Positions 25,758-57,677 of a stretch of 64,000 bases of DNA are shown here, in pieces. The stretch lies in the sequence record NC_042081.1, one strand, 5' to 3'. Position 1 is the stretch's first letter, and every line of letters starts with the position of its first letter. Under the pieces are notes generated by a model. The model had not been told where the DNA came from and did no database searches. It was given only the letters and a program-made list of their open reading frames with translations. Made by a program: the position numbers and the translations under genes.

Positions 25758-26054
25758 TTAATTTACATCTTTCATTACAAAGCAACTACCATCATTAAAG
25801 ACAATCTTAATTAGATTGTCAGTTAATGGTCGTTTATATACAACACATTTTACATCGGGGAGTTTAACTACTTCTTTTAAAGCATCTGGCATACCAATTA
25901 GATTAATGGTAGCTGCTACTTTATTTAGTGTGTCAAGATGTGAAATCAGCTCATGTGCTGACTTAACCAAATCTACCATTGTTTTGTCTTTATCTACCAT
26001 GCTAGTTACTCGATTTGATATATGAGGTACATACATCGCCAAAGTCTTCACCAC
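25758..26054 (-). CDS. Hypothetical protein (98 aa)
   Basis: ORF track; overlaps the upstream gene. Confidence 0.65.
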   Translation of the reverse strand: MVKTLAMYVPHISNRVTSMVDKDKTMVDLVKSAHELISHLDTLNKVAATINLIGMPDALKEVVKLPDVKCVVYKRPLTDNLIKIVFNDGSCFVMKDVN

Positions 26055-26496
26055 TAGTATCAGCTACAATTGCAACTGGAGACCATCGAGCGGCGACAGC
26101 CTCACATACACCGATCGAATTCACTCTACGGATCATATGTGCACCAGTATCAATTACACTGAAACTGAGTTCACTAATAATTTCCACTCCTTTTAGTTTA
26201 TCGATACTATCAATAACCTGCGTACTAATTAGATAATTAGCTGTATCGTTATTATACGCAAGCACTAGTTTGAAACTCATTAGGGAGTTATCTTTATCGG
26301 TGTCCCCAGCGATTAACTCATGATTTGAAGTGAGTGTATAGATACAACTACTCTCCTGAGCAGTAATTGGTGATCCTGGTGAAGAACTATATACACTAGG
26401 TGCATTAGCTGTATTTAGTGCAAACTTATTTACAGTGGAATTAGCGCTAGGAACTTTATAACCAATAGGTCTGGCAGTGAAAATTACAACGCTCAT
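26002..26496 (-). CDS. Hypothetical early protein (164 aa)
   Basis: GAGG RBS; early promoter upstream. Confidence 0.8.
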   Translation of the reverse strand: MSVVIFTARPIGYKVPSANSTVNKFALNTANAPSVYSSSPGSPITAQESSCIYTLTSNHELIAGDTDKDNSLMSFKLVLAYNNDTANYLISTQVIDSIDKLKGVEIISELSFSVIDTGAHMIRRVNSIGVCEAVAARWSPVAIVADTSGEDFGDVCTSYIKSSN

Positions 26497-26574: not shown

Positions 26575-26604
26575 ATAAAGCCTCCCCGAAGGGAGGCATT
26601 TATG
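26575..26604 (-). terminator. Terminator with UUCG tetraloop ending the gp182-183-184 run
   Basis: Minus strand gcctccc-ttcg-gggaggc. Confidence 0.85.
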
Positions 26605-27297
26605 TCAATTACCACTATAGGTACCTTCAGTACCTTGTTCTTTACGTCTTACGAGGCGTTGATGAATTGCACTAAGAGCACGGTCCATTGAATTAATCAC
26701 TACCTGATTCTCTTCACATGCAAATGGGCCTGCTTGATAACCTTCAAATAAATCTTTAACGATTTTAAGTAGACAGTCAGCAGTTAGGCCATTTACACCA
26801 ACTTCTGGAACAAGTCCATTCTGCATTAGGATAACACATTCAGTCAGATTATCACCAGGCATAGCAGCTGGGTTAGTCTGAGCATTATAACCAGTTACCA
26901 CATAACGTTTAGTTGCACCTGATTTCTGATCAATACCACTTGCTTCAATATTTAGACCATTTTCATCAAAATGTTCATGGCCATAAATACCTTGCATAGT
27001 TACCCATCCACCATCTTCTTGATAAATCCAATCTACCCCATTTACATGATAAGTATCACCTGGTTCAGGGTCAGTTGGAAGATCTTTAGTAGTGGTTAAT
27101 GCACGGATACGCGCATATTCTTCAATTGCAATTTGTACATCAGTTGCAGTAATTTTCTTCTCAGGTTCAGTAGCTTCATCTTGTTGAGACTTATCGCTAC
27201 CTTCCTTTTGATCATTATCCATATCGGAAGAATCTACTGTACTTTTAGCTTCTTTACTTTCTAAGGAAGCTAACCACTCAAGATTAGGTTTAGACAT
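26605..27297 (-). CDS. tad1: Tad1-family cyclic-nucleotide sponge (anti-Thoeris/anti-CBASS) with a long N-terminal extension, gp184-like (230 aa)
   Basis: C-terminal MQNG..GVNG..LLKIVKD..YQAGPFACEEN..RAL..R..R..GTEGT aligns with the Tad1 consensus as recalled; GAGG RBS supports ATG at 27297. Confidence 0.82.
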   Translation of the reverse strand: MSKPNLEWLASLESKEAKSTVDSSDMDNDQKEGSDKSQQDEATEPEKKITATDVQIAIEEYARIRALTTTKDLPTDPEPGDTYHVNGVDWIYQEDGGWVTMQGIYGHEHFDENGLNIEASGIDQKSGATKRYVVTGYNAQTNPAAMPGDNLTECVILMQNGLVPEVGVNGLTADCLLKIVKDLFEGYQAGPFACEENQVVINSMDRALSAIHQRLVRRKEQGTEGTYSGN

Positions 27298-27304
27298 ACT
27301 TACC

Positions 27305-27610
27305 TCAATAAATGAAACCACCAATGTAAAGTGACACTACTACATCGGCAACCCGAGGGTCTTGTGAATATTTAGATTTGACTAGTTTAATAAGTTCGGC
27401 TCGATTTTTAATGAAGCCTAGTTTCTTACTATCAATTTCCTCAGCTTCAATTAGGAAGTCATTTAACTTCTTCTTACTACCCAGTACATTAATCACCATT
27501 TGATCAATAACTGCATTAGTGTTTGATAGTTTAGTTAACTCTTGTTCAAAAACTTCCTTACGTCCTTCTGATCCAATTAGAGCTAGACCGATCTTTTTAA
27601 GTAGAGACAT
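27305..27610 (-). CDS. Hypothetical protein (101 aa, gp183-like)
   Basis: ORF track; AGG RBS. Confidence 0.8.
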   Translation of the reverse strand: MSLLKKIGLALIGSEGRKEVFEQELTKLSNTNAVIDQMVINVLGSKKKLNDFLIEAEEIDSKKLGFIKNRAELIKLVKSKYSQDPRVADVVVSLYIGGFIY

Positions 27611-27668: not shown

Positions 27669-36432
<8,764 letters not shown>

Positions 36433-45157: not shown

Positions 45158-45970
45158 ATGCAACCATATTCTAATTTTTCTGGTTTGCAACAGCGTACTA
45201 ATAACCAAGTAGTTATCGGCAGTGATATGTTAGCCGGTACTAATAAAAAAGGTGTATTAGTACCTGATGCGGATGGTTACTATCTAACTCCACTAGGAGC
45301 TTATGGTACCCGAAATTCAGCTGGTATGTTCTATGAAATGGCATCCGGCGTATCTATGTTTAATCCAGACTCACCTTTAATGCGCCGTGTTAAAAAGGGT
45401 GTTCTATTCATGGAATACAAACACCCTGAACCCTATCGTAAAGATGGCACACGGATGAATGAACATGAGTACCTAATGCGAATTCGTCAAATCGATGATG
45501 ATCGTGTGTGTGCGCATATTAAGGAACTTATTCTGGTTGATTCTACAGATGAGAAAGGTCTTCCTATTAAACTAGTACTTGGCAAATGCAAACCATACGG
45601 TCCTTTTGGTAAGTACTTCGAAGCATCTATTACCAATCCTTCTCAGAATACTTATTGCTCGGTAAGGTCAATAACTCAAGATGATCCTATGCGCGGTATC
45701 AAATATACCCGTGAGATTTCAACTTGGGATATGGTTGGGGAAGGTGGTATTTACGGTGCTAATAAATGGAATTCCCCTGCATTAGAGAACTATGAAGATC
45801 AATTAATGGTTATCACGCCTGATACTCTATATCAGGTACAGCGTGAACGTGAACGTCAAATTAACATGGGTTTTGAATGTTCTGATATCACCAATGTGAC
45901 AGATCTAGCGAAAAGTCTTGGCTGGGATATTTCACCAGTTAAACATAGGCGCCCTGGCTTCATGCGTTAA
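45158..45970 (+). CDS. gp175: Prohead protease (phiKZ gp175, 270 aa)
   Basis: EYKHP (His) and CSVRS (Ser) like T4 gp21; PALE autocleavage motif. Confidence 0.92.
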   Translation: MQPYSNFSGLQQRTNNQVVIGSDMLAGTNKKGVLVPDADGYYLTPLGAYGTRNSAGMFYEMASGVSMFNPDSPLMRRVKKGVLFMEYKHPEPYRKDGTRMNEHEYLMRIRQIDDDRVCAHIKELILVDSTDEKGLPIKLVLGKCKPYGPFGKYFEASITNPSQNTYCSVRSITQDDPMRGIKYTREISTWDMVGEGGIYGANKWNSPALENYEDQLMVITPDTLYQVQRERERQINMGFECSDITNVTDLAKSLGWDISPVKHRRPGFMR

Positions 45971-56489: not shown

Positions 56490-57677
56490 TTAAATACCTT
56501 CATTCTCATAATGAGTAATGCAGTGACTAACAAATGTTAACCAGACTTTAAGAGTTACTGCTAACCAATGGGTGTAGTTACCAACAGGTTCTGCTAATTT
56601 TCGGGATATCTCAGCGAGCATATTAATTGCCTCGCCATTTGCCCTTCCCAATAACTCACTACGTTCAGCTAGCTGTCGAATTGAATCATCTACAACTACC
56701 TTAACTGTTTTATATTCTACTTCGCCTTGTTTAGCACGTTCAGCGATCGTTAAAATATTAGCAATACCAGTTACAATATCACTTAGCGTAGTTACAGAAG
56801 GTACTTCTATATCTCGTTCAGTGCTATCAATTGCATTGATTTGTAACTCTGTAAATTCCATTGTAAATGTATTGCGAACCATTTCTAGTGCAGATTGTTT
56901 ATTAGTAACTGATGTAGCTATATGGTCAGCATCAGTATAAACAAATGCACGATTAGCTGGTAAAATATAACTTCTATGGGTACCAGTAGAAGTAGTCTCA
57001 CCTTTCTTTAATGGCTCATCCCCTGGCGGCGCTTTAAAATCACGACGCACTATATCGGCAAAAGATTGTAATAACTCATCAATGATTTCTGTAGTGGTAT
57101 CTTCGCCTTGATTATCTAAGATATTCAATGCTTGTCTACTAATATTTCGAGCAATATTAGAAGTCATTTTAGGATAAGTCATTAAAATATAATTAGTGAC
57201 TTCTTTGATATCTAAAAGATTATCTGGTCGATCACCAATGAATTCACCGTTAATAGATAATCGCTGTAAACCAGAAACAGTCAATCGAGTATTAGTCGTA
57301 CGATTACCTAGTTTTGCAAGTCGCCTAGATAATTTTTGCTGTGTTTTACGCACATGTGAAATACTGCCAGTAAACTTGACGTAGAATGCCGTGAGTGTTT
57401 CGATTACCATCCGCACAATATCTCGTGCAGCCTTAGCAGCTCGAACTAATGCATCTTTTAAAGCACGTAGTGTAATTATACCGCCTTCTTTTATGGAGAA
57501 GGCGGGATCGATACTTTCTAAAGCAAATGACATCGCTTTAGACAGGTCTTCAGATGCTACGTCACGTCCATCTAGCAGATCTTGATAACGAGCTAATCGA
57601 TGGCGATATGCTTCAACAGAAACAATAGCCTCTTTGAGTTCATTATTGGTAATTAATAGTTCTGCATATGTGGACAT
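56490..57677 (-). CDS. Inner-body/head ejection-type protein (395 aa, gp163-like)
   Basis: FALES processing motif; paralogous to the adjacent 522-aa protein. Confidence 0.8.
   Translation of the reverse strand: MSTYAELLITNNELKEAIVSVEAYRHRLARYQDLLDGRDVASEDLSKAMSFALESIDPAFSIKEGGIITLRALKDALVRAAKAARDIVRMVIETLTAFYVKFTGSISHVRKTQQKLSRRLAKLGNRTTNTRLTVSGLQRLSINGEFIGDRPDNLLDIKEVTNYILMTYPKMTSNIARNISRQALNILDNQGEDTTTEIIDELLQSFADIVRRDFKAPPGDEPLKKGETTSTGTHRSYILPANRAFVYTDADHIATSVTNKQSALEMVRNTFTMEFTELQINAIDSTERDIEVPSVTTLSDIVTGIANILTIAERAKQGEVEYKTVKVVVDDSIRQLAERSELLGRANGEAINMLAEISRKLAEPVGNYTHWLAVTLKVWLTFVSHCITHYENEGI

Follow-up and report, generated by a model that had tools for sequence, protein, structure and literature searches.

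Residues 109–230 of gp184 of Pseudomonas phage SL2, a phiKZ-type jumbo phage, are a Tad1-family domain, and the protein as a whole is very probably a three-part precursor that is loaded into the head, cut by a gp175-type protease and able to deliver its Tad1 part at the next infection. This picture of gp184/Tad1 as a head-packaged, protease-trimmed and injected sponge is supported and already known. A 2025 TnSeq preprint, in which orf184 is identified as tad1 and found dispensable, describes the N-terminus of gp184/Tad1 as wedged in the capsid and the C-terminus as freed by the head protease and injected at the next infection, and a 2026 review gives the same model. The head location, the cleavage by gp175, the injection and the dispensability for growth were shown by others, and the packaging and processing model, which the sequence-only reading of this DNA had put forward as its new part, was already in print. 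The same reading had suspected that a phiKZ Tad1 homologue might have been reported, and the protein is named Tad1 in later work. According to AntiDefenseFinder, Tad1 is the only known anti-defence gene reported for phiKZ. The present analysis covers the homology, the fold, the pocket residues, the identity of the capsid chain, the conserved sites and the gene context, and what we say on the cut sites, the ligands, the time of expression and the sufficiency of the injected amount is inferred. The additions to published knowledge of gp184 are modest and descriptive.

Gene and locus

The window (the whole 64,000-nucleotide stretch that was analysed) belongs to phage SL2; the 5-kb stretch around the gene is 100% identical to SL2 and 97–98% identical to about 45 other phiKZ-type genomes. 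The product of the open reading frame at 26605–27297 matches chain I ("gp184") in PDB 8Y6V, the phiKZ capsid structure, with 100% identity. The open reading frame is the counterpart of PHIKZ184, which is annotated as "structural protein" in AF399011 and comes after PHIKZ181–183 in the phiKZ record; the SL2 gene has the same genomic position. With the sequence and the position identical, only the strain differs, and the published facts on gp184 apply. The features of the locus and the protease gene of the window are as follows.

26605–27297, minus strand: gp184/Tad1 gene (open reading frame and translation), 230 aa and a stop, ATG at 27297
27305–27610, minus strand: gp183 homologue of 101 aa with unknown function; 7 nt separate its stop from the gp184 ATG
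27669–29663, minus strand: gp182 homologue, 664 aa, first gene of the gp182-gp183-gp184 unit
26580–26597, minus strand: terminator-like hairpin 8 nt past the gp184 stop, 7-pair stem with 6 G-C pairs and a T-rich tail
29684–29711, minus strand: terminator-like hairpin in the gp181–gp182 interval, with a 12-pair stem and then a T run
45158–45970, plus strand: head maturation protease, gp175 homologue (phrog_3014 "head maturation protease", E 3e-90)

As the sequence-only reading had it, the gene ends the gp182-gp183 run: gp184 is the last gene of a gp182-gp183-gp184 unit with terminator-like hairpins at both ends, and a GAGG-type ribosome site is present in the 7-nt gap that separates it from gp183. 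The product of gp182 is the baseplate spacer ring in phiKZ (phiKZ structural atlas). Co-transcription of gp184 with the tail gene is likely, and late timing of its expression is plausible. A scan for sigma-70 promoters showed no enrichment (35 sites versus 40 expected), a result that is irrelevant here, since phiKZ transcription is independent of the host polymerase; the published late-promoter element of phiKZ is four bases long. The hairpin at 26580–26597, which separates gp184 from the following gene of that strand (26002–26496), is terminator-like on both strands.

The protease encoded at 45158–45970 is presumed to be the enzyme that processes gp184. A search for the N-terminal motif of gp184 in the other open reading frames of the window gave nothing informative. 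Separately, an internal head protein of 395 residues (56490–57677, minus strand, phrog_8282) carries V-S-V-E-A at residue 19, which is likewise a candidate protease site close to an N-terminus.

The Tad1 domain and the N-terminal extension

Along the sequence, gp184 is divided as follows.

27259–27297, minus strand: N-terminal propeptide, residues 1–13, with S-L-E13 at its end as a candidate gp175 site (18 of 20 relatives have [SAG]-x-E in this column)
27121–27258, minus strand: acidic, poorly conserved linker, residues 14–59, ending in A-I-E59 (13 Asp and Glu versus 6 Lys and Arg; pLDDT below 50)
26974–27120, minus strand: small beta module, the probable capsid-bound piece, residues 60–108, ending in G-H-E108 (modelled strands and match to 8y6v_I)
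26608–26973, minus strand: Tad1 sponge domain, residues 109–230 (phmmer, family profile, AF2 and Foldseek, pocket residues)

A phmmer search against all solved chains retrieved the Tad1 entries 8kbb, 8kbe, 8kbg/h and 7uav with E-values of 2e-6 to 4e-6 over residues 117–226, and a profile built from 20 relatives matched the solved Tad1 proteins across the whole domain (E 3.7e-12 to 6.8e-11). When phage genomes were searched by tblastn, a match was obtained to the gene annotated as Tad1 in Bacillus phage SBSphiJ7 (E 4e-4). The AF2 model of residues 109–230, calculated with a 64-sequence alignment, has a mean pLDDT of 95.6 and consists of strands at positions 8–14, 21–27 and 45–50 followed by helices at 65–81 and 87–112; the Tad1 fold is an N-terminal antiparallel beta sheet and then two long C-terminal helices. 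Foldseek against the PDB with this model gave 20 significant matches, all of them Tad1, with TM scores of 0.73–0.74 to CbTad1 and CmTad1 (8smd, 7uaw and 8kbb), and the best match outside Tad1 had an E-value of 0.06. Sequence identity to the solved Tad1 proteins is only 20–28%. A Pfam scan with the whole protein and with the C-terminal 120 residues gave no match to PF24729 (Acb2/Tad1 hairpin) even at E 10; this family is listed in the precomputed table for the 96%-identical relative P0001 and for most other relatives. A word-based protein search with the C-terminal domain returned no short-form Tad1, and these were found by an exhaustive search of cluster representatives. The C-terminal Tad1 pattern that the sequence-only reading had picked out thus exceeds what chance would give in phmmer, in the 20-relative profile and in the fold, and the HMM and structure comparison that it had proposed came out in favour of Tad1 (best profile E-value near 4e-12). 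The full-length AF2 model was poor (pLDDT 55.8, TM to Tad1 approximately 0.44) and was replaced by the model of residues 109–230 for this comparison. The domain is modelled as folding independently of the extension, and it is the best conserved part of the protein, with a mean identity share of 0.60 versus 0.22 for the beta module.

Residues 1–108 contain 24 Asp and Glu versus 10 Lys and Arg, corresponding to a pI of 4.3, and residues 1–69 were modelled with pLDDT below 50, which indicates disorder. Within residues 70–108, the model has a three-strand module (strands 82–85, 88–92 and 98–100). Composition and model therefore agree with the description first given from the sequence, an acidic and disordered extension of about 100 aa followed by a small module. 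[quoted passage not shown] Only 34 residues are modelled in 8y6v_I. The full-length model of gp184 matches them with a TM score of 0.82 and 100% identity, whereas 8y6v_I was not among the matches of the model of residues 109–230 against the PDB; because of this difference, we assign the capsid-bound piece to the beta module of the extension and not to the Tad1 domain. A word-based protein search with residues 56–111 found only near-identical proteins.

The cleavage motif of gp175 is S/A/G-x-E. Residues 1–108 contain five such motifs versus 2.4 expected from shuffled sequences (P 0.064), so the number of motifs alone is not significant; the conservation of individual sites is more telling, because the extension is otherwise poorly conserved. 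Besides the E13 site, [SAG]-x-E is found at the same or an adjacent column to E59 in all 20 relatives, and G-x-E is conserved at E105/E108, at the start of the Tad1 domain, in 13 of the 20. Sites at E13, E44 and E59 had been named from the sequence: all three exist, and E13 and E59 are conserved, but E44 is not conserved among the 20 relatives. The conserved site E108, just before the Tad1 domain, was absent from that list and is, judging from its position and conservation, most likely the one at which the sponge domain would be freed. In phiKZ gp93, a capsid-wedged and injected protein, the cut by gp175 falls between Glu13 and Ser14, the same position as E13 of gp184. The capsid paper lists gp184, second-hand, among the capsid proteins cleaved by gp175.

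Two groups of head-packaged proteins can be set beside this arrangement. The phiKZ gp93/PF12699 internal head proteins resemble gp184 in that their N-terminal part is wedged at the capsid shell, and the C-terminal part of gp93 is unseen in the capsid and injected. They differ in that gp93 has as its cargo not a sponge but a helical PF12699 domain, the activity of which is unknown, and in that the capsid-bound part of gp93 is an extended arm and that of gp184 a beta module. IPI* of phage T4 is a head-packaged inhibitor of the GmrSD restriction enzyme with a short N-terminal capsid-targeting peptide; the prohead protease cuts the protein after Glu, and ejection takes place together with the DNA. 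IPI* thus follows the same logic as gp184, but its sequence and target are unrelated; IPI* is free in the head, whereas gp184 is partly anchored to the shell.

Architectures in related phages

Three architectures were observed among the phiKZ relatives: module with Tad1, Tad1 without the module, and module alone. In phiKZ-type phages, the order is propeptide, linker, beta module and Tad1. Proteins of the phiPA3 gp217/201phi2-1 gp280 type (189–205 aa) consist of a propeptide, an acidic linker and a Tad1 domain that is 55–60% identical to that of gp184, and differ from gp184 in having no beta module; phiPA3 gp217 (L002:3773-4342) keeps only the propeptide and the acidic linker of the extension. 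In phiPA3, the module sits in gp096 (L003:2943-3908), a virion structural protein of 321 residues encoded among genes for PF12699 internal head proteins. Residues 181–235 of gp096, in the middle of the protein, are 54% identical to the beta module of gp184 (E 4e-18). The third architecture is that of Psa21 gp249 (L001:3857-4132), which is syntenic with gp184 and whose 91 residues comprise no more than the N-terminal part and the module. The protein stops two residues short of the conserved G-x-E site, and tblastn of the whole Psa21 genome detected no Tad1 domain. Capsid plug and sponge are thus separable, and fused in phiKZ, and the modularity seen in Psa21 and phiPA3 fits a putative cut at E108.

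Beyond these phages, the Tad1 domain matched 2136 cluster representatives at E 0.001 or better. Among the best 150 of the 2136 representatives, approximately 40 have N-terminal extensions of 60–365 residues, with Tad1 at the extreme C-terminus; these long forms were counted outside the 19 relatives found first (P0001–P0019) and are among P0021–P0167. Most of the approximately 40 extensions have no Pfam match, and several match PHROGs 11049, 9467 and 872, which are of unknown function. Three (P0157, P0073 and P0104) match Pfam PhiKZ_MCP at the N-terminus, at profile positions of about 135–370, a fragment that corresponds to the linker and the start of the insertion domain. We considered this PhiKZ_MCP-like fragment as a possible loading device; the location of the insertion domain and its linker gives no clear support for such a role. 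Two of these three genes were located as follows.

L006:8001-9455: P0157, 484 residues, on 252-kb metagenomic contigs from several samples (at least 10 contigs)
L010:465-1832: P0073, PhiKZ_MCP-like fragment and C-terminal Tad1

That loading part and cargo are interchangeable modules across jumbo phages is a tentative generalization, to which we give clearly less than an even chance. As a separate observation, tblastn gave matches to gp184 with 37–38% identity in Rhizobium phage LG08 and Agrobacterium phage OLIVR5 (H37/H38), which have genomes of approximately 150 kb. These matches start at gp184 residue 86, within the beta module, run through the Tad1 domain and span two annotated genes, one of which is annotated as "ABC transporter ATPase". 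LG08 and OLIVR5 possibly carry another long form of Tad1 outside the jumbo phages.

Ligands, delivery and biological meaning

Mutation of F82/N92 or of R109/R113 in CbTad1 abolishes the binding of both gcADPR and 2',3'-cGAMP. These residues align to Y187, N197, R214 and R218 of gp184, and the pocket is kept. Among 63 relatives, the Asn and the first Arg of the pocket are invariant and the second Arg is present in 59. Judging from these residues, the gp184 domain is expected to bind TIR-made gcADPR, and probably cyclic dinucleotides. Binding of gcADPR and relief of Thoeris are asserted for phiKZ Tad1 by secondary sources, and the 2023 preprint of Li et al. contains no mention of phiKZ. The short-form Tad1 proteins of about 125 aa (SBSphiJ7 Tad1, CbTad1 and CmTad1) share the fold and the residues of the gcADPR/dinucleotide pocket with gp184, which adds to them a 108-residue extension, probably for loading. 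Short-form Tad1 proteins are cytoplasmic and are made after infection.

Where gp184 departs from the solved short forms CbTad1 and CmTad1 is in the residues for cyclic trinucleotides. In solved Tad1, the phosphates of these ligands are held by one Arg and one Thr (R90 and T97 in CbTad1), and a Met-Trp-Lys patch (M102, W103 and K106 in CmTad1) holds together the hexamer that is needed for trinucleotide binding. The Arg/Thr pair aligns to E195 and N202 of gp184 and the patch to S209, A210 and Q213, so that both the pair and the hexamer contacts are absent. The replacement of the MW in the ALMW motif, noticed from the sequence, is real (Ser209-Ala210). An altered ligand preference had been read into it; in solved Tad1, Met-Trp is a hexamer contact and not a ligand contact, and the absence of the pair is common. 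In the 64-sequence alignment, Glu occupies the position of the trinucleotide Arg in all 9 jumbo-phage long forms. Among the nearest short-form representatives, the Arg is found in only 7 of 54 and the Trp in only 9 of 54, from which the trinucleotide and hexamer residues are features of a clade and not of the whole family; at the Trp position, Ala is the commonest residue of the nearest relatives (22 of 54). The jumbo-phage Tad1 clade would accordingly be one that keeps the gcADPR/dinucleotide pocket without the canonical trinucleotide site.

The statement in a review that phiKZ Tad1 blocks both CBASS and Thoeris speaks for a full dual sponge of the CbTad1 kind, able to bind cyclic trinucleotides in addition to gcADPR and dinucleotides. 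We consider such a dual sponge improbable in view of the replaced Arg/Thr pair and hexamer patch and of the Glu common to the jumbo-phage long forms. The behaviour of a phiKZ mutant in an unrelated gene also argues against it: a cAAA/NucC CBASS system blocked this mutant, and Acb2, a sponge for cAAA, rescued it when provided in trans. As no change to tad1 is named for the mutant, its Tad1 was presumably present and did not neutralise cAAA.

For delivery, there is the published injection of a fusion protein. gp184 with a C-terminal 3xFLAG tag, packaged in trans, was detected in translation-blocked cells post infection and was counted as injected; the evidence is a western blot with n = 1. The tag is carried by the Tad1 end of the protein, so that the Tad1 domain is part of what was injected. 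Together with the identity of the capsid chain and the listing as a gp175 substrate, this bears out the head loading, gp175 processing and ejection that had been proposed from the sequence. In the mechanism that we favour, the precursor would comprise a short propeptide, an acidic linker, a beta module of about 35 residues and then the Tad1 domain. The beta module would fill the space left between gp86 and one subunit of the major capsid protein, below the hexamers around each capsid vertex. As the head matures, the gp175-type protease would cut after the Glu of S/A/G-x-E, likely after E13, E59 and E108, and the cut after E108 would free a Tad1 domain of approximately 13 kDa inside the head. 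At the next infection, this domain would leave the head with the DNA, so that the sponge would be in the cell already when signalling begins. After ejection, phiKZ DNA is at first enclosed in a membrane vesicle, which may keep the sponge from the cytoplasm.

The amount that is delivered matters for this mechanism. With five vertex complexes per vertex (capsid paper), the head would hold approximately 55–60 copies of gp184, few binding sites against a cell-wide signal, and late cytoplasmic precursor may for this reason matter as much as the injected pool. A stronger version of this argument makes the unprocessed precursor in the cytoplasm late in infection the sponging pool that matters, with packaging as a small carry-over or a structural role. 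The cytoplasm is the site of translation for every phage protein and also the place where the signals are made, and the Tad1 domain as modelled would not need to be released from the extension to fold. We nevertheless regard this version as rather unlikely, although clearly less so than the dual sponge, as C-terminally tagged gp184 was shown to be injected and as propeptide and protease-type sites persist in the phiPA3-type relatives despite their lack of the beta module, which points to selection for delivery of the Tad1 domain itself. At the other extreme, gp184 may be mainly a structural cement of the capsid vertex, its Tad1-like domain being a tethered remnant without any function in immunity. 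In favour of this, the beta module is ordered within the vertex-binding complex, and Psa21 retains it without a Tad1 domain; the gene, however, tolerates transposon insertions with no marked competitive defect (competitive index approximately 0.35–2.0 for the control-insertion group that includes orf184/tad1). A remnant would also hardly be the best conserved part of the protein, with pocket residues that are invariant or nearly so, nor would it be expected among the injected material, and we consider this explanation very improbable. Loading into the head, trimming by the gp175-type protease and delivery of the Tad1 domain with the DNA is thus the reading that we retain.

To the published model, the present analysis adds a conserved G-x-E site (E108) exactly at the Tad1 boundary, a testable candidate for the release point of the sponge, together with the prediction that the jumbo-phage Tad1 clade does not take up cyclic trinucleotides and evidence from related phages that capsid plug and sponge are separable modules. 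By arriving together with the DNA, a sponge would remove the unprotected lag against signalling defences such as Thoeris and CBASS. An early sponge would matter most for a nucleus-forming phage, the DNA of which is shielded while the host is still able to signal and shut down; the value of a DNA-borne sponge for phiKZ has already been argued in the literature. Should every extension of the other long forms prove to be a loading device, delivery of signal sponges from the head would be a widespread strategy and not a peculiarity of phiKZ, and the conserved G-x-E boundary would be a general "cut here" junction for packaged cargo.
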